Shown piece by piece: positions 2,660 to 39,118 of a stretch of 64,000 nucleotides of DNA. Numbering within the stretch: position 1 is the first letter of the stretch; each line of letters begins with the position of its first letter. The notes below the pieces were generated by a model. It searched no databases and was not told the origin of the DNA. It worked only from the letters and a program-made list of their open reading frames with translations. Source of the DNA: Tubulanus polymorphus (taxonomy: Eukaryota; Animalia; Nemertea); contig NC_134033.1 in assembly GCF_964204645.1 (NCBI RefSeq), positions 4,116,231 to 4,180,230 on the forward strand. The letters run 5' to 3'. The position numbers were made by a program, and so were the translations under genes.

Positions 2660-2673
2660 CTTTGTTGTCTTCT

Positions 2674-2691: not shown

Positions 2692-2696
2692 GTTAA

Positions 2697-3347: not shown

Positions 3348-6300
3348 AGATTAGAAAACGCGTTTGGAACGATGTAAGACAAATTATTTCCCGAAATATC
3401 GAGAAAACGAAGATAAATGAAAGAGTTGAACGTCGACTCGTTAAATACGACTCGATTATTAGACAAAATCAAAACCCGAGTTGATTCTATAAAACGATCA
3501 GTGATATCTGATAAAAGAGCATTTTCACAATCGATGAAATGACCCCGGCAATTACAACGCTCAGGACACGTGACCTTACAGAATGACTCGTCATCCGAGT
3601 TATGTTTACAATTTACGACTCCGTCGCAAACTTCAGATTGCGGAATACATCGGTTTTCCTGGCCACATTTAAACATTCCCGGACACGACCAAGTCTCGCA
3701 GTTTCGTTCATCTTCTGAATTAGGACAATCGGATCGACCGTCACAAACGTGTCTGATCGGTATACAGTAAGATGCCGGACATTTTACAGTACCAGCCGCG
3801 CATTCGAAGTCATTACACGCGAGTATATGTTCAAGATTTCTACATACCGGGAAACCAATCGGCATCCTTTCTAAAATACACCTTTCGTGTCGGGAATAAC
3901 AGCGAAGAGAATTGAACGAACATCTTTGTTCATCCGATTCCTTACACAGATCTGTGAAACGAGTCGAACATTGATTGTCATCATTACAGTAAACCTCGGG
4001 ATTCACTGTCATATTAGTAACCAATTCGTCTTCTTCGAGACTTCCGCTACAATCCACGACACCATCCCGATACAACTGAAAACTAATACATTCACCGTCC
4101 GCGCACGAGAACCCCTGACAAAGTTCGGAAGTACATCCAACCTCATCGGAACCGTCTTTACAGTTGGCTAGTCCGTCACATCGTTTATAACTATCGATGC
4201 ATTGGTGATTGGAACAGCGATATTGCGTAGATAAACACGGTGGATGATAGCACGAGTTCTCATCCGAGCCATCGACGCAATCTCTCATAAAGTCACAGAA
4301 ACCGCTTATCGATATAACCTGTCCATCGTTACAGCGGAACTGACTGTGTAAATTGATATCCGTACAATCGAGTTCATCTTCACCGTGTTGACAGTCGTGT
4401 CTGGTATCACATACGCGATGGTCGCTGATACATCTTTGATCGTTACATTCAAACTGCCACGATTTACAACCGCTTATAGAAGCCAACTCTTCACCAGTTA
4501 CATTATAGGTACACAACACGGAATGTACTTTATCATTGAAGGCAGTCACTGACCATTTAACCGATTGAATATAAGTAATTTCATTTCTGGTCACCAGTGG
4601 TTTGATAACTTTAAATCCATCGAGGCCCATTGTCAGTATAGCGCCATATTGATGACGATATTGAAATTCGCTGACCAAGTTTTTCACGTCACTTTCTGTA
4701 TTTGAGGTGATTTTTACTATTTCGGCGCGGAAACTGTGACACATTTCTCTAGCACTCCGAATATTCAAACCTCGATTGTTTTTCCAGTCGGTTAGTATTT
4801 GAAAACATTGTCCCGAAATAGTTACCCAACCTCTTGGACAGGTTGAATTTATTAAAGTAATATCGGGAATCGTTTGATCTATTGTTTTATTTAAGTCTGT
4901 ATTTGATGAATTGTTCGCATCGTTTATCGTTGAATTGTGTTTGTTTTTGATGTCGATTCTCTCAGATTCACAAATGAATGTCGTGTGCGTCTCCTCGATT
5001 TGACACGGGAATCGAACCCAGTTCGCCGATCCTCGTGGATTATTCAGTATCATCGCCGTACACGGCATATTGACGTCATTTATCGGTTGTTTTCTTAGCG
5101 GAGATATCAATCCTCGAATAACTTCTGGTATCGTTTCATTAATAACAGGTTTATACCACTCTGTGTAGCTCAATGGTTTACCGTCAGTCCACGTGTAATA
5201 ACCATCATTCTGTTTCGCGAAGAAAATGAAATATATCACTTCTTTAAAAATCATTAGATTTTAATTTATATTAGAATGCATTAGTCTTACCTTCCATTTT
5301 AATCCAATCATCATTATGAGTGCTTTTAATGTATAAGCCATTCGGAGAAGTTCTGTAGCGAAAATTCTTTTGACGGAAATCATTTCCTGTTCTGAGTTGA
5401 TACTGAGTAGATGTCCCGCGTACTTCTGTCTACAGTATATTTCAGCGTTCTCCCAATTCAGACGTTCATCTCTGATGAATTTGATGCAGGAAATTCCGGA
5501 ATCCAGAAATCCTTGTTTACAGTAGAAATTATCGAAATGTTTAATCGGTAACGACTCGTGTAAAGTGTATTGTATTTGAAATGTCGGAATATAATTCTTT
5601 ACTTCAAAACGCAGAGTATTATCTCTTATACTATGAAATATAAGTCCACGAACCGCGTTATTTTCACATATTAAAGTTTCGTGTTGGGTACTAATAATTT
5701 TGATCAGTTTTCCATTTTGGAAGAGGTTGTACTGTATCCGCTGTATCAAGATTATTGGATCATTCTCACGTATGCTGTTTGTTTCGCATGAAACTGATCC
5801 AATAAATTTGACAATGAATCTGTAATATTGAAATATATTTTGTTCCATATGGTTTTCAAATTTATATGAAATAGATTCTGATGTAAGTCCTGCCCAACCC
5901 GGGTAGTTCGGTGACTGGACGAGTCCACATTTATCTTTAGTAGTAACTGGGAGATGGGATCCAAGAAATCCAGAACTATCAGATTTTTTCACTCCTAGAC
6001 ATTTACGACGTAGTTGAACTATTAGTGGATACTGCCAGAACCCAAACTCATTAACTGTGAAATCTACAGTGTTTAGTACGAGACTGTTATTAAGAAACTG
6101 ATTACTCAAACTCAGAAACTGATCACATGACCATGACATCTTGAAAAAACATTTATCATTTTGATATTCGTGTTCTGATAATATGTGAATATTTTTCAAG
6201 CGAAGGCGTCGATTTTCAGGTGTAATCACGAGACAGTGTGACGTCATATTGATCTGACGTTCTTCTTCCTGTAGAACATAACCATCACAATCAGTAGGAG

Positions 6301-8296
6301 CAAATTGTAGAGATGACCAGACAGGATCACCAACTGTTAACTGATTGTTATAGTAATAAGCGTATGCTACTACAGTAACCGGTCCACCTGATGTAATCAG
6401 GCTGACGACAGATCGACCGTAGTATGAACCAGGACAATACGGACCATTGCGTCTAACTGTGAAATTACTACCATCAAATATAAAAAAACCAGCTCGATCA
6501 CAGTTTTCTGATAGCACTGTTAGTTTCAAATGTTCTTCATACATGTTCACTTTCCAGTTTAGTTGTAATGTAGTTACACGATACAATGTATTCTTTGATC
6601 TCGGGAACAAGTGACCACCTGTTATTGTCACGCCTACATCAATCTGAAATATAAGGAAATTGATAACAACATTGAACGTTTACAATAAATTTTTACGTTT
6701 ACAATCCTCCCCCCGTAATGACATTTTGTCCCTGTACATTTCCTCTCTGGTCAATATCACCTAGTTTTTATGTGCTATAGTGTTTGTCGTTCTTGCTTGA
6801 TATATGTACTGTGTAATGCCATACTTTTAGTCACTCTTGAAAATGGTTTTTAGCATAAGACCGAAAATTCGAGGTTTTAATAGATTTAGATAGTTTTGAT
6901 GTTTTAAAATCTTTATCGATCCTGTGATTGTGGGACTCATATTTCATTCGTCTCTCGCGATTTATTGCGTAGTTTTATCACGTTGAACAATACAACAATT
7001 TCAAATTCCCTATTACAATGATTCTATTACACGAACCCAATTTACAAATCACTGTTATAAACTTACCCTTATCCTTGGCTTGTTGACGTAGACGTCTGAT
7101 ATTGTCATCGATTTCACTTCAAATTCTATTTTCAAATTCGATCTTAAAAAATCCGATGTCGTTAAAACGCACAGAATCACGAGAAATCCGTCTGATTTTA
7201 CACTCAGAGATTTAAGATGGTTAAAACTGAGTAAAATATCAATTCTCACAATACGTAACCCTTCCTGTTTATATACACCAACGACACCTGGTGACGAGAC
7301 GAGATCACGTGTCCAGTTGAAGACGACGTACTGCAGAACATCGACTGTGATAGACCAGCAGTATAAGTGTTTAGACTGAGTTACTATATGTGGTATTCCA
7401 TCAATTGTAGTGAGCAGTCCTGATTTATTATAGACTTGAATTAACGGGTTAGAGACTTTCCAATCTGATATTTTGTAAACTTGCACGAGTAACTGCGACT
7501 TAACTCTACTTGAAAAAAAATCAATACGTGCTCTTTTAGTTTTAGTATAAAACGATGAAGGTGGATGTCCGGTTTGTTCTCGTATAAGAGCTATAGGTTC
7601 ACTGGTGCTGTTCCATCCGTCGTAAATTTGAGGACGAGTTTTCATTGGATCCTCACCTGGTCTTAATCTGAAATCTATCCGTATGAACGTTAAATTCATT
7701 GCAAACCCGTCTGGCATCCCGATCCATTCAAATTTTAACTGCAATTTACATAGCAGGGTAGAAATCGCGAATTTATAACCTGTTTGAGTTGGTAATTCTT
7801 CTACTGCACCTTTGAAAATGCATTTATATTCGATTTTCAAACGACTCTGTTCTTCAAAACGATATATAATATAAACCCGACTACCTCGCGCTCCATCGAC
7901 GTTACTCCTAAACAACAACGAAATCAAATCGCTACTGCGGATATCTAGTTGTTTTCTTCCGGTAGCGCAGAGTTTGTTGTCGGACTCACCGACGAGAAGG
8001 TAGTTTTCGTTACAGAATATCGACGGCTCGATGTCGTAGTAAACTTGAACGAGAAAACTTCCCGGTAAAGAGCTGTTGACGAACCAACGACATTCAACAC
8101 CGCGAACTAACGACGGATAGTTCGGTGAAACGATGTAACCAGACGTAGAATCGACGGAGTATTGAGTGTTGCTACAAGATGAACTGACTGTAACAGACGC
8201 GGCTTCCTCGACAGAGTTTGCGCGATCAGCCCGCGTAAATATACTATCTCCGCAAGCGATCAGTAAAACTACGAACAACGCTTTCATTCGCTGCAT
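3348..8296 (-). pseudogene. GRL101-like CUB/CTLD-LDLa-LRR GPCR, copy A, interrupted in the LRR region by the BEL/Pao element
   Basis: Exons 8296-7067, 6643-5291 and 5209-3348 with phase-0 GT-AG introns. The frame runs NAFSNL| into LTR sequence where copies B and D continue NNLY.LDL. Confidence 0.9.
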
Positions 8297-11200
8297 ATTG
8301 AACACAATTCACGCTTCAAAACAAACACATTTCTAACTATTTCCAAATTTGCGCGATATTTCTCTAAAGAGTCGCTGCAAAGTAATGACGAATTCGCAAA
8401 TGGCAGAAGTTGACGAATTGATCGAGTCCAATTATTTTGTAAAAAAATCCGCCCATCAAACTGGCGCCAGTCTCGTATTTGTAAAACTTTAATCTGCTCT
8501 CGGTTTCGCTGTAATTACCGCGGTTTCTAAATTTAGACGTGTTTCAATATATCTTGTTTATAATCATGTGCAATTATTTCTCTAAAAATATTTACAGTCG
8601 CTCCCGAACTGCGTTCAGTTTGTGATAATATTCGATGACATTTTCTATCTATACTGCAAAATATTCTGCGTCTCTGTAAAACACTTCGTCAATATCTGTT
8701 TCGACAATTCACACTCTACAGTCAATATAATAACTGAGTTGAAGCTAAGTGAAGCGCGTGGATATCTGATTGTGGTGAGTAATAGGTCTTGTTTGGTACA
8801 GATTGTTTTGAAGAAACAACAGCAACCAAGTAAGGGGATGACAGCGGTAGAGAAATGTTCAGAATCTTTAGTTAGGAAACAGTGACAATAACCGCGGCGA
8901 GAATCTGACTCGCGCACTCTGATTCGGTCCGTTCTAAATTTGTCCCGTTCCGGACCCGTTTTGAACGGTCTAACTGGTTCGTAGTTTGAACGCGACGAAA
9001 GTCCAACCAATAATAAATGAGGTGAATTAATAATTCCGAAACTTATGATCATTATTTAAAAACGTTTGATTTGTCTCAATCTATGTACATTACAGTCCGT
9101 TTGGCATTTTACTTGACACGGATCAGTAAAATTCATCGCACTGAATTGTTTTTATTCCTCCTTCCTCTTTTCGGCACAATTTTTCAACAAAAGAAAATTC
9201 TGTTATTCCTTTCCAGGTTTCAATCCAGTTACTTATAAAAGTTATGTTCATCTTAATATTCAATCTCATGATTTGCGAAAAATAGCTCTTTTTTTCATTT
9301 TTCCCATTATTTGAATCAACTTAATCATGATTTCCAATTATTTTCGTTTTTTGCGGTCCTTTGAGGTTTTTTGTGTTGAATACTCTAATGATAAAACAAA
9401 TTAATTTTCGTTTTTCCCATTTGTCTCCCTCTGTTTTGGAACGCCTACACGTATGATGGCAAAAATGATGATCTGATATGTTCGGTCACCGATAGTTGGG
9501 GAAATGTTTGTGTGTCTAAATAATTATTATTGAGAATAAGTTGGCGCCAGCGGTAGATTCAACTTTTAAGTATCTGATATAATTTGTTCTTCTGGTACGA
9601 AATTATCATCGGTTGATAATAGTTTTAATTCAGATATATTAAAGAACTTTAAAATATTGTATTATTTCAACACTGGTGTATATTCGGTCCGTGAAAAAGA
9701 ACATATTTCAATATTCCCCAATCAACTGTGTTTATGCATTATGATGTTATATTTTTGGTGGGAGGTGCTTCGTCTTTCAGAGACTGTTATATTGATAAAT
9801 CTAACTAACAACGACCTCGCGGGAAACATGAATTTTTAATCCGTATCATTTTCATCGAGTGATTAAATCATTGTTAAACTCAATTCTTCTTTCGGAACTA
9901 AATGACAATACTTCATAGATTTTTGAGGGTTGAATCGTAGATTACTATTTAGAAATATAACGCCTTCAAATTAGGGGAATTTTATATCCATGAAACCCTA
10001 AATCCTAGTTTCAAACGGATGATTCCCTCTCGCTCCATCAAACCCGCTTATATTTACGCAAGAATCTTGGGGATATAGATGTTAGAGAATTAGATATTAA
10101 TGTAAGCTTAATCCTTCACAGTTAGAAATAATATTGAAGGTTTTTTACGAGTTAGTAATTCGGAAAACACGACTCCGGTAAAATTTCTACCAATTCCAGC
10201 AAGTTTTGAGTTAGATATAACTAAAAACCAAAATTAACGGTAGTTATGGTAATCGGGGTAATTATGCCCTGCTGTTAACTTATCTCATAGTATTCGTTCA
10301 TCTAATGCGGTCACGTGACTCCAAACAAACTCAACCAAGTTTTAGGATTTCGAGGTTCAAGCCGGGGCTGATTATCCGTAGAATTGTCACCGGTTGTGGT
10401 ATTTGTCTAAAAATACACTTATAAACTAGTTTATACGTCCACGATTGAATGTAATTTCGACGATTCAATTCATACGACAAACTATTTTCGCATTTCATCA
10501 TTTCTCTGGTTTTCAATGTTGTGGTTTTCAGTGGTTCATAAAATACCGATCTGATTAAGGTCCTGTCTAATATAGATGAGCTGTTCCTTGATAAATGAGG
10601 AATATATGAACATATGTGTTAATTAGTAAATTGTCCTATAGTATACGCCCCATGGTTGGGCTGTTTTTGAAATAGAACCCAAATGTTAGAAGAACTTATA
10701 ATTCTTTGAGCACTCACCTGGCATTTTGTATTAATTGTTTTAGGGGTACTCTGGTGAATAAAATCGGGTTGATACTATTTATACGAATGTAAAACAGTCA
10801 TAAACTTAAAATCATCGATATCATTGTTTATTTTTCATTGATAGTATAATTATTTTTTTATGTTTTTCAAAGCTGGAAGAAAAAACGTCAGAATATTTAT
10901 TTCAAGCGAATCTATTATGTTTGAAAATCTTTGTTAAGACGAGGTAAAGTTTGCAAAACAATATTTTTCTAATAGAAATAATGTTATTAAAGAAATAAAA
11001 GATGGATGTGTTTGATCATGATGAACTTTGATATATGATAAATTCTTTGAGTACAATACCTATCATTTAGCAACGTATAATAGTTGTCATAAGAATAAAA
11101 CGACATACATTCATCATCATGTTATTACTCTTCAATTGTTAATAAGTTTAGTTTATAGCAACCTTTTCACCGTTGTATGGAATTCAGTGGTTCATGTGAT

Positions 11201-12899
11201 AGCGATTTAATTAAGGTCCTATCGTAAAATAGAGTAGAGTTTCTTACAGAGAGACTTACATTATAATTCCTCAAGCACGTAATCTGGCATTTTCTATAAT
11301 TGTTGAATGAAAATAAATACGATTCACATAAAAACCTTTCGATCGTTTCATGAAGTTTTTAGCAACAATTAAAGGTTGATTCAAATGAAGCCCTTTGGGC
11401 TTGGCCCTGCTTTGTTTATTTCATCGTTGTTTCTATCATGAGTTTTCTTCGAATAAATGATATTGACTTTTATCACTTGTGGTGACTCTTTCTCATAGTC
11501 GAGAAGTTTGAATTGGTCAGTGTGGACGGTTTATGAATTTACACGCGCCAATTCGCTGTACTTGGAAAAATCCGACATGATTGCAAAAATAAGGATTCGA
11601 GCATGCAAGCACTGGACCCTAACACCTTTGGTCCCTCTAGACCCATAACTGTAAACCTCGCGATTGAAAAAGCTGCCATTTGGTTCACAGAAACGACACT
11701 ATACCTCGGTGGCAGCACCGTACGGTCTAATTCAATGCAAATGTACTATATTGATAAAGACGAATAGAAGCAAGCGGGTTCGTAATGGGAGATTTTCCGA
11801 GTTTTTGAGCTGGTAAGTGATTTAGATATTCATTCATTACAATAAAAATTATAATAAATTTCTCTAGATGTTATTAAACATCGAAGTTCCTAATTTACAT
11901 AAACTTCATAGAATCTACTGAAAACGCTCTTGAAGATTTTTCATCGAATTAACATGGATGATAATTCGGGTTATAGACAATGAAAATTCGATTTAATGAA
12001 AGTATTGCAAACTAGTGTTTCATCTAATTCATGTTATTTTCAAAAGGATTTGAGGCGTTGCATAAACATATCATTTCAACGCGATCTACTTCATACAGTG
12101 AAATATTCGCTAAGATATTGAAGTTAAGATGTACAGAGTCAGTCCGGTATCATATCTAGCCAATGGTGGTCGTCGTGTCCATTGAACCATGGCGTAATCT
12201 GTTTATATCGTGTCCTGTTATTATTGTCCTCGGTCTTTGAAATCACGAAATTAAATTGAATTGTAAAACGTTCGATTCGAAGTGAATCAGTTCGAGGATC
12301 AATTCTTGTAACATTGGTCAAATCCAGCATACAATTATGTGTAGCCCATACGAGCACTTTGACCACAATCTAAAGCTTAGCGGATACTGACGTATTCAGC
12401 ATTTCTACATGAACGTCCTTGAGATCACTCGCTGGTCTAACACGCTTTGAATCGTCCAGTAGAATTTAAAGTATTTGTATTTTTTTCTATGTCGCCCTTT
12501 CGCAATTGCTCTGATTGCTACCATGCCGATTAAACCAACCCAAATCGACCGGAAGACTCAAAATCTTCCGGAATAAACTAAGAAGCTCCACACGTCACAT
12601 GATTCATGGCGAGTAGACATTTTGTGGAGTCAAATGTATAATCATCATGATTTAATTTCAATACACTGCAGAGCTATGTGATGTCCATTCAAAACTTATG
12701 TTTCAAAAATGAGCGCAAATTATCGCAACAATGGGGACCTCGGGGAATCGCCACAAAATGGCGCCTAGAAACTGGAAACTTATTTAATGTGAATCATTGT
12801 ATTCGTTCATCTAATGCGGTCACGTGCCTCAGGATTCGAGGTTCAAACCCGATTTATAGATAGGCAAACATTATACAGGGACTCGTGTCAAACTGTGGT

Positions 12900-15800
12900 T
12901 TATTTACTGGATGTCGTCAATCCTAGTCGTCGTTTATTGCGTTCACGAATAGATTTCATATCGATATTTAGTATTGTATAAAGCAGCGGATTCAGAGACG
13001 AGTTGATCGGTAAAAATAGAACGGCCAGCCAAGCGGCCACCTGGTTCGGTATCTCGACCGAAAATACGGCGCAAAACTGAACGGTTATTATCGGTAGCCA
13101 GCAAAATAAATTACAAAGATTGATTACTAAACTCCTTCGAGCTAAAACCAGTTCGGTAGGATCGGCTCTACCCGAGCCCGACCTACTTCCAGATACGAGT
13201 CTATACATCTGGGCGTACGTCGTCATTATCGTAGCCAATATGGCCGAATTAAACAAGGCAAAAATAGCGAATGAATAGTGCCAGCCATCGACGTCGATCG
13301 TCAGTAAATTCATAGGCAAACAAACTCCAGTTGTACCGTAAAAATTGTCTCCGAAGTAAGACGACGATGACAGCGGTAGAATAGAAACTGTGCTTATAAC
13401 GAGCCAACAAATGCTGCAAATACCGATAACGTATTTCGGAGTTATAATCGCACTTCTAGAAAACGGGTTGACGATATTTGAATATCTCTGACGTGTTAGA
13501 AATAAGAGAAAAGTCAAGGAACCTTCGCACGAAACGGTGACAATAACCCCGGCGAGACGACATAATGAGCTATCCGTCCAGGTTTCAGAATTCAGATAAT
13601 AAACGCCTTTGAACACGTAGTCAGCTCCTGCGATCAAAAACAAATAGACCGACATCAGAAAATCACAACCGGCAATATTTATGATGAGGTTATCCGAAGA
13701 TGTGTTACGTGTTCCGGCGGATTCCATCCGCAAAGCATGAACGCGAAATATAATAACGATACTGTTAGCGAGAAAACTGAAAGATGCGATCATCCAGATG
13801 ATGGCTCTCAGTACAGCGTTACCCATCAGGTCAGAGCAGGTCGAAAATTGATCAGCTTCGGGAAGACATCGGTCAACATTCGGTGCCATGCAGCAAAATT
13901 TGTAAGCATCCGAAGCGAGGTATTTCAATGATGTAAGATCGCCAAGGACGTTTCTTTGTACGGATATTACTTCAAAATTGTTGACAAGGTTTAAAATTTC
14001 AAGTCGAACCAATCCAGAAAAAGCATTAGCTGGAAATATATTGGATTCTGTTACTACTGATATTTAACGACTGTAATGCGGATAAACCTTTAAATACATT
14101 TTCACCGAGAACCGATATAGAAAGTCCGTGAAGATCGAGAACAGTTAGTGACGTCAGACCTCGGAAACTACCGTCTTCTAAATGTTGCAGCGGATTTCCG
14201 ATAAGAAATAGTTGTTTTAAACCGATCAAACCTGCGAATGTATTAGCAGATAACGATGTTATGCGGTTGTGTGTAAGGTCTAATGCGTATAGATTATTTA
14301 GATTAGAAAACGCGTTTGGAAGGATGTAAGACAAATTATTGCCCGAAATATCGAGAAAACGAAGATAAATGAAAGAGTTGAACGTCGACTCGTTAGATAC
14401 GACTCTGTTATTCGACAGAATCAAAACCCGAGTTGATTCTATAAAACGACCAGTAATATCTGATAAAAGAGCATCTTCACAATCGATGAAACGACCCCGG
14501 CAATTACAACGTTCAGGACACGTGACCTTACAGTATGACTCGTCATCAGAGTTATGTTTACAATTTACGACACCGTCGCAGACTTCAGATTGCGGAATAC
14601 ATCGATTTTCCTGGCCACATTTAAACATTCCCGGACACGACCAAGTCTCGCAGTTTCGTTCATCTTCTGAATTAGGACAATCGGATCGACCGTCACAAAC
14701 GTGTCTGATCGGTATACAGTAAGATGCCGGACATTTTACAGTACCAGCCGCGCATTCGAAGTCATTACACGCGAGTATATGTTCAAGATTTCTACATACC
14801 GGGAAACCAATCGGCATCCTTTCTAAAATACACCTTTCGTGTCGGGAATAACAGCGAGGAGAATTGAACGAACATCTTTGTTCATCCGATTCCTTACACA
14901 GATCTGTGAAACGAGTCGTACAGTGATTGTCATTATTACAGTAAACCTCGGGATTCACTGTCATATTAGTGACCAATTCGTCTTCTTCGAGACTTCCGCT
15001 ACAATCTACAACACCATCCCGATACAACTGAGAACTAATACATTCACCGTCCGCGCACGAGAACCCCTGACAAAGTGCGGTAGTGCATCCGATCTCATCG
15101 GAACCGTCTTTACAGTCGGCTAGTCCGTCACATCGTTTATAACTATCGATGCATTGGTGATTGGAACAGCGATATTGCGTAGATAAACACGGTGGATGAT
15201 AGCACGAGTTCTCATCCGAGCCATCGACGCAATCTCTCATAAAGTCGCAGAAACCGCTAATCGATATAACCTGTCCATCGTTACAGCGGAACTGACTGTG
15301 TAAATTGAGATCCGTACAATTGAGTTCATCTTCACCGTGTTGACAGTCGTGTCTGGTATCACATACGCGATGGTCGCTGATACATCTTTGATCGTTACAT
15401 TCAAACTGCCACGATTTACAACCGCTTATAGAAGCTAACTCTTCACCAGTTACATTATAGGTACATAACACGGAATGTACTTTATCTTTCGTATCATCGA
15501 AAGGTTTTAATAACCATTTAATTGATTGAATATGAGTAATTTCATTTCTGGTCACCAGTGGTTTGATAACTTTGAATCCGTCGCGGTCCATTGTCAGAAT
15601 AGCGCCATATTGATGTCGATATTGAAATTCGTTGATCAAATTTTTCAAGTCGCTCTCTGTATTTGAGGAGATTCGTACTATTTCGGCGCGGATGCTGTGA
15701 CACATTTCTCTAGCACTCCGAATATTCAAACCTCGATTGTTTTTCCAGTCGGTTAGTATTTGATAACATTGTCCGGTAATTGTTACCCAACCTCTTGGAC

Positions 15801-18800: not shown

Positions 18801-18938
18801 GTATTGAGTGTTGTTACAAGATGAACTGACTGTAACAGACGCGGCTTCCTCGACAGAGTTTGCGCGATCAGCCCGCGTAAATATACAGTCTCCGCAAGCG
18901 ATCAGTAAAACTACAAACAACGCTTTCATTCGCTGCAT
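12900..18938 (-). pseudogene. GRL101-like GPCR copy B (two nonsense codons plus a frameshift)
   Basis: Exons 18938-17709, 17607-16252, 16170-12900. TAA at 16353-16351 (Glu in paralogs), TAA at 16128-16126 (Tyr in paralogs), and a +1 base at ~14026. Confidence 0.92.
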
Positions 18939-22290: not shown

Positions 22291-22294
22291 TCAG

Positions 22295-26900: not shown

Positions 26901-29900
26901 AAGTAACATCGGGAATTATTTGATCTATGGTTCTATTTAATTCTGTATTTGTTGAATTGTTCGCATCGTTTATCGTTGAATTGTGCTTGTTTTTGATGTC
27001 GATTCTCTCAGATTCACAAATGAATGTCGTGTGCGTCTCCTCGATTTGACACGGGAATCGAACCCAGTTCGCCGATCCTCGTGGATTATTCAGTATCATC
27101 GCCGTACACGGCATATTGACGTCATTTATCGGTTGTTTTCTCAGCGGAGATATCAATCCCCGAATAACTTCTGGTATCGTTTCATTAATAACAGGTTTAT
27201 ACCATTCGTTGTAGCTCAATGGTTTACCGTCGGTCCACGTGTAATAACCATCATTCTGTTTCGTGAACAAAATGCTAAATTATTTAACAATTTTTCATTA
27301 AAAGTCTTACTTTTCTAATATATATTTGCCAACATTAGTCTTACCTGCCATTTCAATCCAATCATCATTATGAGCGCTTTTAATGTGTACGCCATTCGGA
27401 GAAGTTCTGTAGCGAATAATCTTTTGATGGAAATCATTTCCCGTTCTGAGTTGATACTGAGTAGATGTCCCGCGTACTTCTGTCTACAGTATATTTCAGC
27501 GTTCTCCCAATTCAGACGTTCATCTCTGATGAAATTGATGCAGGAAATTTCGGAATCCAGAAATCCTTGTTTACAGTAGACATCATCGAAACCTTTAATC
27601 GGTAACGACTCGTGTAAAGTGTATTGTATTTGAAATGTCGGAATGAAATTGTTTACTTCAAAACGCAGAGTATTATCTGTAAAACTATGAAATATAAGTT
27701 CACGAACCGCGTTATTTTCACATACTTTAGTTTCATGTTGAGTTTCTATGGTTTTGAAATATTTTCCATTAAGAAAGTGTTCGTAATTGATTGATTGTAT
27801 CAAAATGATCGGATCATTCTCAAGCATGTTGTTTGTTTCCCATGAAACTGATCCAATAAATTTGACAATAAATCTGTAATATTGAAATATGTTTTCTTGT
27901 ATCGGGTTTTCAAATTTATATGAAATAGTTTTTGATGTACTTCCAGCAAAACCCGGGTAGTTCGGTGACTGCACGAGTCCACATTTATCTTTAGTAGTAA
28001 CTGGAAGACGGGAACCGGCGAATCCAAAACTATCCGCTTTTTTCACTCGTAGACATTTACGACGTAGTTCAACTATTAGTGGATACTGCCAGAATCCAAA
28101 CCCACCTTTGAAATCTACAGTGTTTAATACGAGACTGTTATTAAGAAACTGATTACTCAAACTCAGAGACTGATCACATGACAATGACATCTTGAGAAAA
28201 CATCGGTCAATTTGATATTCGTGTTCTGATAATATGTGAATATTTTTCAAGCGAAGGCGTCGATTTTCAGGTGTAATCACGAGACAGTGTGACGTCATAT
28301 TGATCTGACGTTCTTCATCCTGTAGAACGTAACCGTCACAATCAGTATGAGCAAATTTAAGATATGACCGGACAGAACGATCAACTGTTAACTGATTGTT
28401 ACAGTAATAAGCGTATGCTACAACAGTAACCGGTCCACCTGATGTAATCAGGCTGACGACAGATCGACCGTAGTATGAACCAGGACAATACAGACCATAG
28501 CGTCTAGCTGTGAAATTACTTCCATCAAATATATAAAAACCAGCTCGATCACAGTTTTCTGATAGCACTGTTAGTTTCAACCAATCTTCATAGATGTTCA
28601 CTTTCCAGTTTAGTTGTAATGTAGTTACACGATACAATGTATTCTTTGATCTCGGGAACAATCGATAAGCTGATATTGAGTTTCTGTATGAATGCTGAAA
28701 TATAAGAGAATTGATTACAGTATTGAACGTTTACAATACAATAATTTAAAATCTTTACGACCTCGATTTATTGATTTATCGATTTATTGAAAAGTTCAAA
28801 ATGCTGCAATCAAAACTTAACTGCTTCCACAAATCATCATAATTAGTCATGGCAAAAAACATGTGCGTCCGAATATATTGAAATTTGGGTCACACATAAC
28901 GTTGTTATTCCAAGTTTCTCGGTAAAGTTTCACTGGTCAAAATCGCCATCAAAATCATAGATTATTACAATGATTCCATTAACCGAACCTAATTTACTAA
29001 TCATTATAATAAACTTACCGATATCTGTGGCTTGTTGACGTAGACGTCTGACATTGTCATTGATTTTACTTCAAATTCTATTTTCAAATTCGATCTTAAA
29101 AAATCCGATGTCGTTAACACGCACAGAATGACGAGAAATCCGTCTGATTTTACACTCAGAGATTTAAGATGGTTAAAACTGAGTAAAATATCAGTTCTCA
29201 CAATACGTAACCCTTCCTGTTTATATACACCAACGACACCTGGTGACGAGACGAGATCACGTGTCCAGTTGAAGACGACGTACTGCAGAACATCGACTGT
29301 GATAGACCAGCAGTATAAGTGTTTAGACTGAGTTACTATATGTGGTATTCCATCAATTGTAGTGAGCAGTCCTGATTTATTATAGACTTGAATTAACGGG
29401 TTAGAGACGTTCCAATCTGATATTTTGTAAACTTGCACGAGTAACTGCGACTTAACTCTACTTGAAAAAAAATCAATACGTGCTTTATTAGTTTTAGTAT
29501 AAAACGATGAAGGCGGATGTCCGGTTTGTTCTCGTATAAGAGCTATAGGTTCACTGGTGCTGTTCCATCCGTCGTAAATTTGAGGACGAGTTTTCATCGG
29601 ATCCTCACCTGGTCTTAATCTGAAATCTATCTGTATAAACGTTAAATTCATTGCAAACCCGTCTGGCATCTCGATCCATTCAAACAACAATTTACATCGC
29701 CGGGTAGAAATCATGAATTCATAACCTGTTTGAGTTGGTAATTCTTTTACTGCATGTTTGTAACATGTATGTACGATTTTCAAGCGACTCTGTTCTTCAA
29801 AACGATATATAATATAAACCCGACTACCTCGCGCTCCATCGACGTTACTCCTAAACAACAACGAAATCAAATCGTTACTGCGGATATCTACTTGTTTTCT

Positions 29901-30239
29901 TCCGGTAGCGCAGAGTTTGTTGTCGGACTCACCGACGAGAAGGTAGTTTTCGTTACAGAATATCGACGGCTCGATGTCGTAGTAAACTTGAACGAGAAAA
30001 CTTCCCGGTAAAGAGCTGTTGACGAACCAACGACATTCGACACCGCGAACTAACGACGGATAGTTCGGTGAAACGATGTAACCAGACGTAGAATCGACGG
30101 AGTATTGAGTGTTGTTACAAGATGAACTGACTGTAACAGACGCGGCTTCCTCGACAGAGTTTGCGCGATCAGCCCGCGTAAATATACAGTCTCCGCAAGC
30201 GATCAGTAAAACTACGAACAACGCTTTCATTCGCTGCAT
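23985..30239 (-). pseudogene. GRL101-like GPCR copy C (frameshift after TM2)
   Basis: Exons 30239-29019, 28694-27345, 27255-23985. A +1 base at ~24685 (ataattaaac vs ataataaac) gives FKGV*. Also an LDLa Cys>Gly change (RHVGDG). Confidence 0.85.
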
Positions 30240-32110: not shown

Positions 32111-32883
32111 ATATATCAAAGAACTATAATTCATAAACGGTCAGTGAAAAAGAACATATTTCAATATTCCCCAATCAACTGTGTTTATGCATTATGATGT
32201 TATATTTCTGGTATGAGGTGCTTCGTCTCTCGTGGTAGAAACAGTTATATTGATAAATCTAACTATCAGCGTCCTCACGGGAGACATGAATTTTTACTCC
32301 GTTTTATTTTTATCGAGTGACTCAAATCATTGTTATACTAAATTCTTCTTTCGGAACTAAATGACGAATATTCATAGATTATTCAAACGTTTGAGGGTTG
32401 AATCGTGGATTACTATTTAGAAATATAACGCCTTCAAATTAGGGTTAATTTTATATCCATGAAACCCTAAATCCTAGTTTCAAACGGATGATTCCCTCTC
32501 GCTCCATCAAACCCGCTTATATTTACGCAAGAATCTTGGGGATATAGATGTTGAAGTATTAGATATTAAGTGTAATATTAATCCTTCTCAGTTAGAAATA
32601 ATTTTAAAGGTTTTTACGAGTTAGTAATTCGGAAAACACGACTCCGGTAAAATTTCGACCAATTCCAGCAAGTTGTGAGTTAGATATAACAAATACCAAA
32701 ATTTACGGTAGTTATGATAATCGGGGTAATTTTGCTCTGCTGTAAACTTATCTCATAGTATTCGTTCATCTGATGCGGTCACGGGACTGCAAATGAACTC
32801 GAAACCAAGTTTTAGGATTTCGAGGTTCAAACCCGATTTATAGATAGGCAAACATTATAAAGTGACTCCTGTCAAACTATTCT

Positions 32884-35800
32884 TTATTTACTGGATGTCG
32901 TCGATCCTAGTCGTCGTTTATTGCGTTCACGAATAGATTTCATATCGATTGTAAGTATTGTATAAAGAAGCGGATTCAGAGACGAGTTGATCGGTAAAAA
33001 TAGAACGGCCAGCCAAGCGGCCACCTGGTTCGGTATCTCGACCGAAAATACGGCGCAAAACTGAACGATTATTATCGGTAGCCAGCAAAATAGATTACAA
33101 AGATTGATTACTAAACTCCTTCGCGCTAAAACAAGTTCGGTAGGATCGGCTCTACCCGAGCCCGACCTACTTCCAGATACGAGTCTATACATCTGAGCGT
33201 ACGTCGTCATTATCGTAGCCAATATGGCCGCATTAAACAAGGCAAAAATAGCGAATGAATAGTGCCAGCCATTGACGTCGATCGTCAGTAAATTCATAGG
33301 CAAACAAACTCCGGTTGTACCGTAAAAATTGTCTCCGAAGTAAGACGACGATGACAGCGGTAGAATAGAAACTGTGCTCATAACGAGCCAACAAATGCAG
33401 CAAATCCCGATAACGTATTTAGGAGTTATAATCGGACTTCTAGAAAACGGGTTGACGATATTTGAATATCTCTGACGCGTTAGAATTAAGAGAAAAGTCA
33501 GGGAACCTTCGCACGAAACGGTGACAATAACCCCTGAGAGACGGCATAATGAGCTATCCGTCCAGGTTTCAGAATTCAGATAATAAACGCCTTTGAACGC
33601 GTGGTCAGCTCCTGCGATCAAAAACAAATAGACCGACATCAGAAAATCACAACCGGCAATATTTATGATGAGGATATCTGAAGATGTGTTACGTGTTCCG
33701 GTGGATTCCATCCGCAAAGCTTGAACTCGAAATGCAATAACGATACTGTTAGCGAGAAAACTGAAAGTTGCGATCATCCAGATGATGGCTCTCAGTACAG
33801 CGTTACCCATCAGGTCAGAGCAGGTCGAAAATTGATCAGCTTCGGGAAGACATCGGTCAACATTCGGTGCCATGCAGCAAAATTTGTAAGCATCCGAAGC
33901 GAGGTATTTCAATGATGTAAGATCGCCAAGGACGTTTCTTTGTACGGATATTACTTCAAAATTGTTGACGAGGTCTAAAATTTCAAGTTGAACCAATCCA
34001 GAAAAAGCATAGCTAGAAATATAATGTATTCTGTTACTGCTGATATTTAACGACTGTAATGCGGATAAACCTTTAAATACATTTTCACCGAGAACCGATA
34101 TAGAAAGTCCGTGAAGATCGAGAACAGTAAGTGACGTCAGACCTCGGAAACTACCGTCTTCTAAATGTTGCAGCGGATTTCCGATAAGAAATAGTTGTTT
34201 TAAACCGATCAAACCTGCGAATGTATTAGCAGATAATGATGTTATGCGGTTGTGAGTAAGGTCTAATGTGTATAGATTGTTTAGATTAGAAAACGCGTTT
34301 GGAACGATGTAAGACAAATTATTGCCCGAAATATCGAGAAAACGAAGATAAATGAAAGAGTTGAACGTCGACTCGTTAAATACGACTCGGTTATTCGACA
34401 AAATCAAAACCCGAGTTGATTCTATAAAACGACCAGTAATATCTGATAAAAGAGCATTTTCACAATCGATGAAATGACCCCGGCAATTACAACGTTCAGG
34501 ACACGTGACCTTACAGTATGACTCGTCATCTGAGTTATGTTTACAATTAACGACACCGTCGCAAACTTCAGATTGCGGAATACATCGATTCTCCCTGCCA
34601 CATTTAAACATTCCCGGACACGACCAAGTCTCGCAGTTTCGTTCATCTTCTGAATTAGGACAATCGGATCGACCGTCACAAACGTGTCTGATCGGTATAC
34701 AGTAAGATGCCGGACATTTTACAGTACCAGCCGCGCATTCGAAGTCATTACACGCGAGTATATGTTCAAGATTTCTACATACCGGGAAACCAATCGGCAT
34801 CCTTTCTAAAATACACCTTTCGTGTCGGGAATAACAGCGAGGAGAATTGAACGAACATCTTTGTTCATCCGATTCCTTACACAGATCTGTGAAACGAGTC
34901 GTACAGTGATTGCCATTATTACAGTAAACATCGGGATTCAATGTCATATTAGTGACCAATTCGTCTTCTTCGAGACTTCCGCTACAATCCACGACACCAT
35001 CCCGATACAACTGAGAACTAATACATTCACCGTCCCCGCACGAGAAACCCTGACAAAGTTCGGCAGTGCATCCGATCTCATCGGAACCGTCTTTACAGTT
35101 GGCTAGTCCGTCACATCGTTTATAACTATCGATACATTGGTGATTGGAACAGCGATATCGCGTAGATAAACACGGTGGATGATAGCACGAGTTCTCATCT
35201 GATCCATCGACGCAATCTCTCATAAAGTCGCAGAAACCGCTAATCGATATAACCTGTCCATCGTTACAGCGGAACTGACTGTGTAAATTGATATCCGTAC
35301 AATTGAGTTCATCTTCACCGTGTTGACAGTCGTGTATGGTATCACATACACGATGGTCGCTGATACATCTTTGATCGTTACATTCAAACTGCCACGATTT
35401 ACAACCGCTTATAGAAGCCAACTCTTCACCAGTTACATTATAGGTACATAACACGGAATGCGCTTTATCTTTTGTATCATCGAAAGGTTTTAATATCCAT
35501 TTAACCGATTGAATATACGTAATTTCATTTCTGGTCACCAGTGGTTTGATAACTTTAAATCCGTCGCGGTCCATTGTCAGTATAGCGCCATATTGATGTC
35601 GATATTGAAATTCGCTGACCAAATTGTTCATATCGCTTTCAGTATTTGAAGTGAGTCTTACTATTTCGGCGCGGATGCTGTGACACATTTTTCTAGCACT
35701 CCGAATATTCAAACCTCGATTGTTTTTCCAGTCGGTTTGTATTTGATAACATTGTCCGAAAATAGTTACCCAACCTCTTGGACAGGTTGAATTAATCAAA

Positions 35801-38800
35801 GTAATATCGGGAATCATTTGATCTATGGTTTTATTTAGTTCTGTATTTGTTGAATTGTTCGCGTCGTTTATCGTTGAATTGTGTTTGTTTTTGATGTCGA
35901 TTCTCTCGGATTCACAAATGAATGTCGTGTGCGTCTCCTCGATTTGACACGGGAATCGAACCCAGTTCGCCGATCCTCGTGGATTATTCAGTATCATCGC
36001 CGTACACGGCATATTCACGTCATTTATCGGTTGTTTTCTTAGCGGAGATATCAATCCTCGAATAACTTCTGGTATCGTTTCATTAATAACAGGTTTATAC
36101 CACTCTGTGTAGCTCAATGGTTTACCGTCAGTCCACGTGTAATAACCATCATTCTGTTTCGTGAAGAAAATGAAATATATCACTTCTTTATAAATCTTTC
36201 TATTTTAATTAATATTTGAATACATTAGTCTTACCTTCCATTTTAATCCAATCAACATTATGAGCGCTTTTAATGTGTACGCCATTCGGAGAAGTTTTGT
36301 AGCGAATAATCTTTTGATTGAAATCATTTCCTGTTCTGAGTTGATACTGAGTAGATGTCCCGCGTACCTCTGTCTACAGTATATTTCAGCGTTTTCCCAA
36401 TTCAGACGTTCATCTCTGATGAATTTGATGCAAGAAATTCCGGAATCCTGAAATCCTTGTTTACAGTAGAAATCATCGAAATGTTTAATCGGTAACGACT
36501 CGTGTAAAGTGTATTGTATTTGAAATGTCGGAATTCTATTGTTTACTTCAAAACGTAAAGTATTATCTGATATACTATAAAATATAAGTCCACGAACCGC
36601 GTTATTTTCACATATTAAAGTTTCATGTTGAGTTTCAATGGTTTTGAAATATTTCCCATTAAGAAAGGGTTCGTAATTGATTGATTGTATGAAAATGATC
36701 GGATCTTTTCGACCGAATCTGTCTGTTTCACATGATACTGATCCAATAAATTTCACAATAAATCTGTAATATTGAAATATATTTTGTTGTATCGGGTTTT
36801 CAAATCTATATGAAATCGACTTTGATGTACTTCCTGCCGAACCCGGGTAGTTCGGTGACTGCACTAGTCCACATTTATCTTTAGTAGTAACTGGAAGAAA
36901 TGAGCTGTCAAATCCAAAACTAACCGCTTTTTTCACTCCTAGACATTTACGACGTAGTTTAAATATTAGTGGATACTGCCAGAATCCAAACCCATCGACT
37001 GTGAAATCTACAGTGTTTAATACGAGACTGTTATTAAGAAACTGATTACTCAAACTCAGAAACTGATCACATCGCCAAGACATCTTGAGAAAACATTTAT
37101 TAATTTAATATTCGTGTTCTGATAATATGTGAATATTTTTCGAGCGAAGGCGTCGATTTTCAGGTGTAATCACGAGACAGTGTGACGTCATATTGATCTG
37201 ACGTTCTTCATCCTGTAGAACGTAACCGTCACAATCAGTAGGAGCAAATCGAAGAGATGATCTGAAAGGATCACCATCTGTTAACTGATTGTTATAGTAA
37301 TAAGCGTATGCTACTACAGTAACCGGTCCACCTGATGTAATCAGGCTGACGACAGATCGACCGTAGTATGAACCAGGACAATACGGACCATAGCGTCTAG
37401 CTGTGAAATTACTACCATCAAATATATAAAAACCAGCTCGATCACAGTTTTCTGATAGCACTGTTAGTTTCAACAGTTCTTCGTAGATGTTCACTTTCCA
37501 GTTTAGTTGTAATGTAGTTACACGATACAATGTATTCTTTGATCTCGGGATCAATTGATTAGCTGTTAAACCATTCGCGCCCACATCATTCTGAAATATA
37601 AGAGAATCGATTACAACATTGAACGTTTACAATACGACAATTCTAAACTCCTTACGACTTAGAATTAGATAAATATATCAATAACAGTTCAAGATGTTCC
37701 AAACTTAACCCAAATTCTCAACACCCATCATAATTAGTGTCTGCGCAAACAACATGTGTTTTGGGTCACATTGCGTTATTATTCCAAGTTTCTCGGTATA
37801 GTTTCACTGGTCAAAATCGCCATCAAAATATATGTAATTACAATGATTTTATTACACGATCCAAACTTACAAATCATTATAATACACTTACCGATATCCT
37901 TGGTTTGTTGACGTAGACGTCTGATATTGTCATTGATTTCGCTTTAAATTCTATTTTCAAATTCGATCTTGAGAAATCCGATGTCGTTAAAACGCACAGA
38001 GTCACGAGAAATCCGTCTGATTTTACACTCAGGGAATTAAGATGGTTAAAACTGAGTAAAATATCAGTTCTCACAATACGTAACCCTTCCTGTTTATATA
38101 CACCAACGACACCTGGTGACGAGACGAGATCACGTGTCCAGTTGAAGACGACGTACTGCAGAACATCGACTGTGATAGACCAGCAGTATAAGTGTTTAGA
38201 CTGAGTTACTATATGTGGTATTCCATCAATTGTAGTGAGCAGTCCTGATTTATTGTAGACTTGAATTAACGGGTTAGAGATGTTCCAATCTGATATTTGG
38301 TAAACTTGCACGAGTAACTGTGACTTAAACGACAGTTTATTTGAAATGAATTCAATACGTGCTTTATTAGTTTTAGTATAAAACGATGAAGGCGGATGTC
38401 CGGTTTGTTCTCGTATAAGAGCTATAGGTTCACTGGTGCTGTTCCATCCGTCGTAAATTTGAGGACGAGTTTTAATCGGATCCTCACCTGGTCTTAATCT
38501 GAAATCTATCTCTATAAACGTTAAATTCATTGCAAACCTGTCTGGCATCTCGATCCATTCAAACAACAATTTACATCGCCGAGTAGAAATTGTGAATTTA
38601 TAACCTGTTTGAGTTGGTAATTCGTTTACTGCACGTTTTGAGCATTTATGTACAATTTTCAAACGACTCTGTTCTTCAAAACGATATATAATATAAACCC
38701 GACTACCTCGCGCTCCATCGACGTTACTCTTAAAAAACAACGAAATCAAATCGTTACTGCGGATATCTTGTTGTTTTTTTCCGGTAGCGCAGAGTTTGTA

Positions 38801-39118
38801 GTCGGACTCACCGACGAGAAGGTAATTTTCGTTACAGAATATCGACGGCTCGATGTCGTAGTAAACTTGAACGAGAAAACTTCCCGGTAAAGAGCTGTTG
38901 ACGAACCAACGACATTCAACACCGCGAACTAACGACGGATAGTTCGGTGAAACGATGTAACCAGACGTAGAATCGACGGAGTATTGAGTGTTGTTACAAG
39001 ATGAACTGACTGTAACAGACGCGGCTTCCTCGACAGAGTTTGCGCGATCAGCCCGCGTAAATATACAGTCTCCGCAAGCGATCAGTAAAACTACGAACAA
39101 CGCTTTCATTCGCTGCAT
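32884..39118 (-). pseudogene. GRL101-like GPCR copy D (~1,950 aa apart from one nonsense codon in exon 2)
   Basis: Exons 39118-37892, 37590-36235, 36153-32884. TAA at 37107-37105 where paralogs have CAA. Exon 3 is fully open: CTLD end, second CTLD-like unit, ~7 LDLa, CPERCNC cap, LRRs, FCC...CSDLM hinge, 7TM with CWLP and NPLLY. Confidence 0.88.

Follow-up and report, generated by a model that had tools for sequence, protein, structure and literature searches.

Mosaic variable patches in a tandem array of disabled GRL101-like receptor genes of the ribbon worm Tubulanus polymorphus

How do short stretches of a receptor gene come to differ sharply among tandem copies that are 93–95% mutually identical? 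We address this question in a 64,000-nucleotide stretch of the Tubulanus polymorphus genome (contig NC_134033.1 of assembly GCF_964204645.1, positions 4,116,231 to 4,180,230), referred to here as the window, which carries four such gene copies, A to D. The positions of the array, of its genes and of the variable patches are shown in Table 1.

Table 1. Positions in the window of the receptor gene copies, of the inserted retrotransposon and of the exon-2 patches of copy D (omega, ratio of nonsynonymous to synonymous change).
Feature	Position	Strand	Details
Tandem array	3348–39118	minus	four copies, A to D
BEL/Pao LTR retrotransposon	1–3347 (part in window)	minus	7,236 bp in total; in exon 3 of copy A
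Copy A	3348–8296	minus	exon 1 8296–7067; exon 2 6643–5291; exon 3 from 5209 to 3348; from ORFs and alignment to D
Copy B	12900–18938	minus	exon 1 18938–17709; exon 2 ~17607–16252 (shifted acceptor); exon 3 16170–12900
Copy C	23985–30239	minus	exon 1 30239–29019; exon 2 28694–27345; exon 3 27255–23985
Copy D	32884–39118	minus	exon 1 39118–37892; exon 2 37590–36235; exon 3 36153–32884
P1, copy D	37552–37590	minus	first 13 codons of exon 2, length-variable; adjoins intron 1 (37891–37591); 25 haplotypes in 30 copies; omega 1.3–1.5, not significant
P2, copy D	37249–37278	minus	DGDPFRSSLR after NNQLT; 23 haplotypes in 30 copies; omega 1.2–1.45, not significant; codons 109 and 114 flagged by site model
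P3, copy D	36973–37002	minus	17 haplotypes; omega 0.7–0.8
P4, copy D	36892–36927	minus	AVSFGFDSSFLP; omega 0.36–0.57, below 1, p 0.002–0.085
P5, copy D	36826–36843	minus	after SPNYP
P6, copy D	36703–36726	minus	TDRFGRKD after CE; 18 haplotypes; omega 1.3–1.55, not significant
P7, copy D	36616–36687	minus	QSINYEPFLNGKYFKTIETQHETL; deepest block, A+B against C+D; pS 0.47, pN 0.21; omega ~0.5, p<0.004

Gene anatomy, family and lesions

Each gene has three exons, and open reading frames, Pfam matches and homologues together give the predicted domain order CUB, C-type lectin, LDLa, LRR and 7TM. A signal peptide is encoded by exon 1, together with a putative CUB domain and other modules. In exon 2, lineage-specific beta-rich modules take up ∼380 residues alongside the N-terminal half of a putative C-type lectin domain. 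This domain is completed in exon 3, which also encodes the LDLa repeats (six), the LRRs and a 7TM domain of the rhodopsin type. No RNA run containing the array was found, and no splice junctions were seen in the contigs aligned to it. A GRL101-type LDLa-LRR-7TM core had been proposed in a preliminary description of the locus, and it is borne out both by Pfam domains and by named homologues. In exon 3 of copy D the C-terminal 7tm_1 domain (PF00001, E 3.2e-22) spans residues 831–1074, with LRRs immediately N-terminal to it (LRR_8, E 6.7e-31, plus LRR_5, LRR_4 and LRR_1), and six stretches of LDLa (PF00057, E 1.1e-34) N-terminal to these. The top match in the homologue search is itself a T. polymorphus protein; next come GRL101-like proteins at 36% identity (Anneissia, 92% of the query covered) and a Homarus relaxin receptor 1-like protein at 31%, such that the LRR-7TM part is 31–36% identical to these named relatives.

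The extracellular head was searched exon by exon, and profile searches for the C-type lectin domain therefore saw its halves separately; the N-terminal half alone gave a Pfam E-value of 0.036, matched snake-venom CTLD chains at 8e-4 and matched library proteins at values down to 3e-12. Exon 1 of copy D scores 22.9 bits against the CUB profile (Pfam cut-off 21.4 bits), and exon 1 of copy A only 19 bits. The exon-2 modules that bear the patches have no CUB match even at an E-value of 10, and contain merely an SPNYP-like motif; the modules of exons 1 and 2 showed no likeness when their profiles were compared. An HMMER search of 1.84 billion representative proteins found no relatives of the ∼380 exon-2 residues, with the lectin half alone being matched, and a PDB profile search with exon 2 had the same outcome; no relatives were found by word search either. 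Two rows at E ∼2 returned by a PDB search with the module alone are at chance level and were disregarded.

The array is a piece of a very large tandem family of GRL101-like (LGR type C-like) GPCRs. At least 40 copies were scored in the genome, with ∼330 candidates on contigs C9 and C22, and Illumina read depth implies ∼60–80 copies that are at least 95% identical on the scaffold. The family comparisons described below use 30–31 sampled copies, out of the ∼330 candidates.

All four copies in the window are pseudogenes. Copy A was disabled by a young BEL/Pao insertion; the termini of the element are TG..CA, its 651-bp LTRs share 99.5% identity, the 5-bp target site AGATT is duplicated, and one open frame of 1,915 aa encodes Peptidase_A17, RVT_1, rve, Integrase_H2C2, DUF1759 and DUF5641 domains (Pfam). 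The 3′ remainder of copy A lies outside the window, 7.2 kb downstream (C9:4110986–4112341), and is open up to its stop codon. The lesions in the other copies are read from the assembly alone. Copy B has three (a stop at 16353–16351, a TAA at 16128–16126, and a +1 A insertion at ∼14027), copy C has only one, an extra A (+1) within its 7TM part that leads to a TAA at 24687–24685, and copy D has a single nonsense TAA at 37107–37105, where the other copies have CAA. A twin of copy D at C9:3055343 is 99.7% identical, and keeps CAA at this position. In the wider family, lesions are known from 11 of the 31 copies sampled; nine of the 31 are broken inside the 4.3 kb looked at, where most other sampled copies are open. 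The preliminary description took the locus for a receptor repertoire, and while the family and its patches are real, it overlooked that all four copies are disabled. Since A to D are pseudogenes, any recognition role is that of the wider family and not of the window, whose four receptor genes are all broken.

Variable patches and their mosaic relationships

The patch strings from which a hypervariable ectodomain had been proposed were all found in the translated exon 2 of copies A to D. Exon 2 starts with IDVGVTITGGHL in A, ARKTVEPLIIAHM in B, HSYRNSISAYRL in C and NDVGANGLTANQL in D; in the same order, the strings following NNQLT are VGDPVWSSLQ, FVRSDRSYLT, VDRSVRSYLK and DGDPFRSSLR, and those following ET are NSIREN, NNAREN, NNMLEN and DRFGRK. 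Thirty family copies, spanning 2.5 Mb on two contigs, vary at identical patch positions, with 17–25 distinct haplotypes for each patch of 6–24 residues and with invariant flanks. The LDLa, LRR and 7TM parts are near-constant, as had been noticed, with diversities at the three codon positions from 0.02/0.02/0.04 to 0.03/0.02/0.07. Further variable patches, beyond the exon-2 set originally recognized, occur in exon 1 and near the start of exon 3. Intron 1, adjoining the first patch, is the most diverged segment (diversity 0.23–0.33).

An independent Illumina run from the same species has a depth of ∼450–600 over the scaffold as against 8–25 over the patch-rich stretch and intron 1, with the genome at ∼7×. 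Low patch depth beside high scaffold depth in raw reads provides independent support for the patch pattern.

The sharing of patches is incongruent, with A+D, B+C, B+D, A+B and C+D all grouped in one place or another, as first reported. Of 102 four-taxon informative sites, 53 group A+B against C+D, 32 group A+D against B+C, and 17 group A+C against B+D. These signals are clustered, forming 40 runs where 62.5 are expected (none of 10,000 shuffles was as low), and 20 successive sites grouping A+B against C+D fall in one block at D 36700–36625, in P7. Congruent trees along the gene had been named as an outcome that would speak against the proposal; the groupings found are incongruent and lie in blocks. 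Linkage in the sample of 31 falls off over tens of bases, incompatibility between neighbouring sites is far below permuted values, and the four-gamete test gives 31% incompatibility even within 25 bp. Unusually long shared runs were detected in 64 of 465 copy pairs using per-pair permutation p-values, a global threshold having been dropped as it was swamped by the pair of D and its twin. Clustered incongruent sites, linkage decay and long shared runs support well the segmental gene conversion that had been suggested.

Origin of the patch diversity

Diversifying selection in the patches had also been proposed, with dN/dS at or below 1 as the result that would tell against it. The pooled patch piN/piS is 0.85 [0.62–1.14], at or below about 1 and thus largely that contrary result, and diversifying selection is not shown. 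Taken one by one, the patches have an omega of about 1, significantly below 1 in P4 and P7, and these values are biased upward by the picking of patches for their amino-acid variability. Diversity at the three codon positions is 0.241/0.260/0.248 in the patches and 0.040/0.038/0.065 in the scaffold, such that the patches are about four times as diverse at all three positions, in an intron-like manner; over 87 patch codons the three positions are equally diverse (Wilcoxon p 0.8–0.96). The corresponding pS values are 0.277 for patches and 0.087 for scaffold, and introns and flanks have diversities of 0.10–0.33.

A naive comparison of M2a with M1a over exon 2, using five partition trees, gave a likelihood-ratio test (LRT) value of 240 and an omega of 4.8; we set this value aside as evidence, since change in the patches, at silent sites too, runs at 2–5 times the overall rate. 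The signal shrinks once the patches are allowed a rate of their own, and M2a on patches only gives an LRT of 25.6–28.8, with ∼9 codons and an omega of ∼3.1 for 15–17% of patch codons. Nine codons are flagged, at exon-2 alignment columns 2, 109, 114, 251, 254, 292, 293, 303 and 319. In null simulations with recombination, one of 13 reaches the patch-only LRT (empirical p ∼0.1), with null values of up to 27.7 and nine of the 13 above the nominal 5% cut-off. The standard site-model LRT is strongly inflated by recombination in such families.

Gene anatomy, lesions, mosaic and the neutral-like codon pattern of the patches are all shown by the data. The most satisfactory explanation, and one that we consider probable as a whole, is that the patches are mostly old, unconstrained stretches that have been moved between genes by copying, in a family evolving by birth and death together with conversion. 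Birth and death in a tandem family would generate many pseudogenes, and pervasive short-tract gene conversion would operate between the copies. Near-identity of the scaffold would result from purifying selection plus homogenisation, and short segments under weak or no constraint (loops, linkers and intron 1) would drift until every codon position was about as divergent as an intron. Drifted segments would then pass between copies as small cassettes, giving rise to the incongruent mosaic, and we infer that the divergence of the patches could last through their freedom to vary and a less clean conversion of diverged stretches. A handful of patch codons may additionally be under selection for change. 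Several observations count against this explanation: the patches are more diverse than the 5′ flank (0.10), such that a neutral account needs weaker homogenisation of the patches; the patch-only M2a LRT is near the top of the recombination null distribution; and there are multi-allelic codons with little third-position change, together with an excess at positions 1 and 2 in P1, P2 and P5.

An alternative, which is possible albeit rather unlikely, is that the patches are putative ligand-contact loops kept diverse by selection, with conversion recombining loop variants, and that the family is thereby a variable repertoire for recognition, encoded in the germline (immune, chemosensory, or for self or gametes). 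New variants and old cassettes would then both be favoured, and synonymous diversity would arise by tight linkage to selected sites. In keeping with this, the 30 copies are hypervariable at matching short positions, and several codons have 6–10 amino acids at balanced frequencies and an almost fixed third position (exon-2 columns 114, 251, 254 and 292 are examples); however, the three positions are equally diverse over the patch codons as a whole, and intron 1 has diverged as much as the patches. Pairwise omega for P1 and P2 together is 1.63 [1.10–2.51], and P5, with diversities of 0.25/0.25/0.055 at the three codon positions, is the sole patch clearly, if nominally, above 1 (omega 3.3–6.0, p 0.001–0.06 uncorrected for eight tests), but the choice of patches inflates such values, the pooled omega is below 1, and P4 and P7 are significantly so. 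Similarly, the patch-only M2a omega points to selection, but through a test inflated by recombination. A patch nonsynonymous diversity of 0.24, about three times the scaffold synonymous value, also argues for loop selection, as do snail clusters of lectin-headed GRL101-like genes in a hyperdiverse parasite-resistance region (PMC12297450). AlphaFold2 models of the whole of exon 2 (pLDDT 28.9) and of residues 232–372 (pLDDT 41.3) are too poor to place the patches on the surface, and the Foldseek matches of the latter are noise.

Local mutation hot spots, arising from error-prone repair at recurrent breaks or from unstable short repeats and involving neither selection nor the age of segments, are a very improbable source of the patches. 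Diversity is raised equally at the three codon positions, as they would bring about, indels cluster in P1, P2 and P3, and recurrent mutation would also be expected to yield the four-gamete incompatibility within 25 bp; however, long single-grouping runs, such as that in P7, and identical cassettes in distant copies point to inherited old haplotypes, and inspection of the patches revealed neither simple repeats nor a special motif. Least probable of all is an assembly artefact in which mis-joined reads of near-identical paralogues create chimeric copies and false lesions: a scaffold common to tens of copies is hard to assemble and the B and C lesions include single-base insertions, but patch-specific depth in the independent run fits one to two copies, each copy has its own flanks and introns, the retrotransposon insertion is clean with a target duplication, and the same positions vary across both contigs.

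Relationships to other receptor families

Concerted evolution from which diverged segments escape is established in theory and in MHC genes, plant R genes and vertebrate chemoreceptors. The likeness to such families lies in the homogenised scaffold, the short old segments shuffled by conversion, and the many pseudogenes. Variable sites in MHC and R genes have a clear excess of amino-acid change; the T. polymorphus patches, in contrast, are without an established excess at their pooled omega of 0.85. The localised hypervariability on a conserved scaffold that is typical of MHC, R-gene and VLR-like systems is found in this family, and so are the large tandem arrays and many pseudogenes of chemoreceptor-like birth and death.

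GRL101 of Lymnaea stagnalis and the type C LGRs (relatives of relaxin receptors) have the same order of LDLa, LRRs and rhodopsin-type 7TM, to which the T. polymorphus gene adds a head of ∼870 residues with a putative CUB domain, further modules and a putative C-type lectin domain. Tandem GRL101 expansions of 29–132 genes in apple snails have tentacle and labial-palp expression (PMC6573481), and Charonia and Acanthaster have tentacle-specific GRL101-like receptors (PMC13403566, PMC6267866). These are lineage-specific tandem amplifications of the same core, read as a chemosensory repertoire, and the GRL101 passages drawn on here make no mention of patch-wise mosaic evolution (PMC6573481, PMC13403566, PMC6267866). 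Compared with these expansions, the T. polymorphus family belongs to another phylum and has more copies and a larger head. In Biomphalaria sudanica, SudRes2 is a cluster of 12 C-type-lectin-LDL-LRR GRL101-like GPCR genes (PMC12297450); it is lectin-headed, as the T. polymorphus genes putatively are, and likewise densely tandem, with copies that are truncated or variable in presence between haplotypes, and immune recognition has been proposed for it. The snail cluster is small and tied to resistance by association mapping, whereas the T. polymorphus head has CUB-type modules and the four copies described here are broken.

It is conceivable, though we think it unlikely, that the ∼300 intact and broken copies are a germline-encoded combinatorial recognition system, in which a few head-loop codons would be selected for diversity and shuffled by conversion, as a GPCR-based counterpart of MHC or R genes. 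The intact family members probably form a sensor repertoire, most likely a chemosensory one by analogy with the snail GRL101 expansions. If so, it would rank among the largest receptor repertoires with an LGR/GRL101 core, and would provide a concrete candidate set for ribbon worms, in which we know of no chemoreceptor, immune-receptor or recognition repertoire that has been described. The family would also be a clean natural example of how conversion and relaxed constraint can give antibody-like patchiness without demonstrable positive selection.

Gene structure and lesions of copies A to D

The window (G000:C9:4116231-4180230, C9 being contig NC_134033.1) contains a single receptor gene in four head-to-tail copies on the minus strand, A to D, with copies A, B and C sharing 93–95% DNA identity with copy D. 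The RNA runs searched did not include this stretch and reads showed no splice junctions; expression of the gene and both of its introns are predicted from the sequence. Protein searches were run exon by exon. Exon 1 of copy D gives a marginal Pfam match to a CUB domain (22.9 bits, cut-off 21.4), and exon 3 encodes six LDLa stretches, LRRs and a rhodopsin-type 7TM domain (Pfam). Across the junction of exons 2 and 3 the sequence looks like a C-type lectin domain, of which the first half alone was matched. The variable patches lie in the N-terminal ∼380 residues encoded by exon 2, which gave no match in Pfam or word searches and for which a search of 1.84 billion representative proteins and of the PDB yielded no relative. 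In all copies these residues make up beta-rich head modules, and an SPNYP-like motif is the only hint of a CUB origin. AlphaFold2 models of exon 2 and of residues 232–372 reached pLDDT values of 28.9 and 41.3, respectively, which are low because the alignment contained close paralogues only, with no distant relatives to add; a fold search with the model of residues 232–372 recovered only noise.

All four copies in the window are broken, which went unnoticed in the preliminary description. The reading frame of copy A is open throughout, but it is interrupted in the LRR region at window 3348 by an LTR retrotransposon with TG..CA ends, a 5-bp target duplication (AGATT) and a single uninterrupted gag-pol frame of 1,915 aa; the remainder of copy A lies beyond the window, 7.2 kb away. 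Because it encodes Pao peptidase, reverse transcriptase and integrase domains, the element is of the BEL/Pao type, and it is complete and apparently young. The point lesions were called from the assembly sequence. In the family sample, made up of the 31 copies closest to D, nine copies have a stop or frameshift inside the 4.3 kb examined. Over window 33089-34665, in the LRR-7TM part, a few Illumina read pairs carry skips of 37–38 bp and one a skip of 1,357 bp, and these may represent other family copies with deletions.

Features of the receptor array and its surroundings (window coordinates unless prefixed; L031 is a stretch outside the window that holds the rest of copy A)
Feature	Position	Strand	Remarks
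Copy D exon 1	39118-37892	minus	donor TCG/GTAAGT, phase 0
Copy D exon 2	37590-36235	minus	acceptor TTTCAG/, donor AAG/GTAAGA
Copy D exon 3	36153-32884	minus	preceded by 81-nt intron
Exon-2 head modules (example)	5500-6643	minus	
LTR retrotransposon in copy A	1-3347 + L031 6112-10000		7,236 bp; 651-bp LTRs 99.5% identical
27-bp tandem repeat	1859-2111		9.4 copies, inside BEL/Pao element
Copy B lesions	stop 16353-16351; TAA 16128-16126; extra A near 14027	minus	assembly sequence
Copy C lesion	TAA 24687-24685	minus	from one extra A; assembly sequence
Copy D lesion	TAA 37107-37105	minus	CAA in other copies including the twin of D; assembly sequence
Three ORFs between copies B and C	20107-22036	plus	128–141 aa; by eye resembling non-LTR reverse transcriptase fragments; no Pfam match at E 0.001
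(ATACT)21 microsatellite	22183-22290		after the three ORFs
Short dispersed repeat	39676-40186; 43792-44526		79–85% identical; one unit upstream of copy D, another 4 kb further
30-bp tandem repeat	40284-40357		

A mosaic gene family

Using exon 2 of copy D as a query, we recovered from the same genome at least 40 scored copies, out of ∼330 candidates at first look, mostly between 2.27 and 4.8 Mb on C9 with some on another contig, C22; identity between copies is ∼88–95% across the family. Two arrays face each other, at ∼2.79–3.07 Mb (plus strand) and ∼3.80–4.15 Mb (minus strand). The minus-strand array here is connected by an 11.8-kb inverted segmental duplication (window 32753-44499 and C9:3048429-3060180; 97.9% identity overall, 99.7% within the gene) to the plus-strand array 1.1 Mb away, where copy D has a 99.7% identical twin in inverted orientation. 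Window 9685-10360 matches the 3′ flank of copy D (32138-32830) at 91% identity and sits ∼2.5 kb past the end of copy B, not adjoining it, which suggests either that ∼2.5 kb was inserted (10361-12830, lacking ORFs of at least 80 aa) or that the spacer was rearranged. An NCBI protein of Tubulanus polymorphus matches the LRR-7TM part of D at 82% identity, and the next relatives of this part are crinoid GRL101-like proteins (36%) and a lobster relaxin-receptor-like protein (31%). The CUB-LDLa-LRR-7TM architecture is also present in other animals, such as in a 1,642-aa Acanthaster protein.

The patch strings quoted in the preliminary description, and the incongruent patterns in which they are shared, are all present in copies A to D. 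The 102 informative sites among the four copies split 53, 32 and 17 over the three possible groupings and are clustered, forming 40 runs where 62.5 are expected (fewer than in any of 10,000 shuffles), with 20 consecutive AB|CD sites at D 36700-36625. From an alignment of exon 2 in 30 copies we defined seven main patches (P1 to P7) and a 4-codon patch, P1b; the main patches are 6–24 residues long and have 17–25 amino-acid haplotypes each, between invariant flanks. Raw Illumina DNA reads from the same species (∼7.2-fold genome coverage) provide an independent check. Depth is 450–600 over the near-constant scaffold, corresponding to tens of copies within 95% identity, and 8–25 over the patch-rich 36484-37083 and intron 1, corresponding to one or two copies.

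Linkage was analyzed in a 4.3-kb alignment of 31 copies. Mean r2 is 0.148 for sites up to 25 bp apart and declines to 0.043 at distances above 1.6 kb; among pairs of sites no more than 25 bp apart, 31% already have all four gametes. Incompatibility of neighboring sites is 0.359, compared to 0.509±0.008 when shuffled. In 64 of the 465 pairs (∼1.5 expected) the longest shared run exceeds that in all 300 permutations, and the significant pairs include B-C, D-A, D-B and A-C (each p≤0.007). The linkage decay, low neighbor incompatibility and long shared runs uphold the earlier proposal of mosaicism through segmental gene conversion.

Divergence and selection in the patches

The same description also proposed diversifying selection on ligand-facing loops. 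By pairwise counting, 80 patch codons give a pS of 0.277, a pN of 0.243 and an omega of 0.85 (0.62–1.14), a value biased upward by the picking of patches for amino-acid variability; the scaffold gives a pS of 0.087 and a pN of 0.040. What chiefly sets the patches apart is thus that silent divergence rises three-fold along with amino-acid change. In a tree-free test on a wider set of 87 codons, with P3 extended to ten codons and P1b included, the first, second and third codon positions have diversities of 0.241, 0.260 and 0.248 (98, 104 and 101 alleles), against 0.040, 0.038 and 0.065 in the scaffold. Equal diversity at the three positions is exactly the pattern given by an absence of constraint. 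The non-coding DNA of the same genes diverges in the same range as the patches, with diversity of 0.23 in intron 1 across the family (0.33 among copies A to D), 0.125–0.18 in intron 2, 0.16 in the 3′ flank and 0.10 in the 5′ flank.

Codon models were fitted with purpose-written maximum-likelihood code, in which tree shapes were fixed and branch lengths only scaled. With five partition trees for exon 2, M2a fits better than M1a by 120 log units, giving an omega of 4.8 for 8.7% of sites. When each patch was given its own tree and rate, omega did not differ from 1 in P1 (1.3–1.5, on an alignment made uncertain by indels), P2 (1.2–1.45), P3 (0.7–0.8) or P6 (1.3–1.55), and was below 1 in P4 (0.36–0.57) and P7 (0.46–0.53). 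Only P5, with six codons, exceeds 1 (3.3–6.0; p 0.001–0.06 before correction for eight tests). By the measure that the description itself had named, a dN/dS at or below 1, diversifying selection in the patches is mostly refuted, given the pooled value and those of P4 and P7.

A mixture model on the patch codons alone with patch-specific rates yields a class with an omega of ∼3.1 comprising 15–17% of codons (likelihood ratio 25.6–28.8). The flagged exon-2 alignment columns are 2, 109, 114, 251, 254, 292, 293, 303 and 319, and some are striking; at column 114, six amino acids occur with an unchanged third base. We simulated 13 replicates with the same design and pipeline, no positive selection and free recombination between three-codon blocks, obtaining likelihood ratios of 27.7, 16.0, 12.1, 10.5, 10.1, 9.3, 8.7, 8.4, 6.0, 4.2, 3.6, 1.8 and 0.04. 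Nine of these exceed the nominal 5% threshold, and one reaches the observed range, so that the empirical p is ∼0.1; with few replicates and a simple simulation design, this is a calibration and not a proof. Diversity-favoring selection may act on a few of the codons, at odds we consider rather low, and is not demonstrated.

A candidate sensor repertoire

Most of the patch variability is probably of the kind expected where short stretches can vary freely. The constrained parts of the family probably stay alike through purifying selection and copying between genes, and the patches and intron 1 probably keep old, deeply diverged haplotypes, passed around as small cassettes.

Our literature search found no paper on this receptor family in nemerteans. 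The general idea is already known from GRL101 receptors of snails and Acanthaster. One report describes 29–132 tandem GRL101 genes in apple snails, with high expression in tentacles and labial palps (PMC6573481), and others describe GRL101-like receptors expressed in sensory tentacles of Charonia and Acanthaster (PMC13403566, PMC6267866). In Biomphalaria sudanica, schistosome resistance is associated with a hyperdiverse region that contains a cluster of 12 lectin-headed GRL101-like genes (PMC12297450). What is new here is the phylum, the scale, and a large head partly without homologues; by analogy with these systems, the Tubulanus family most plausibly serves as a repertoire of sensors.
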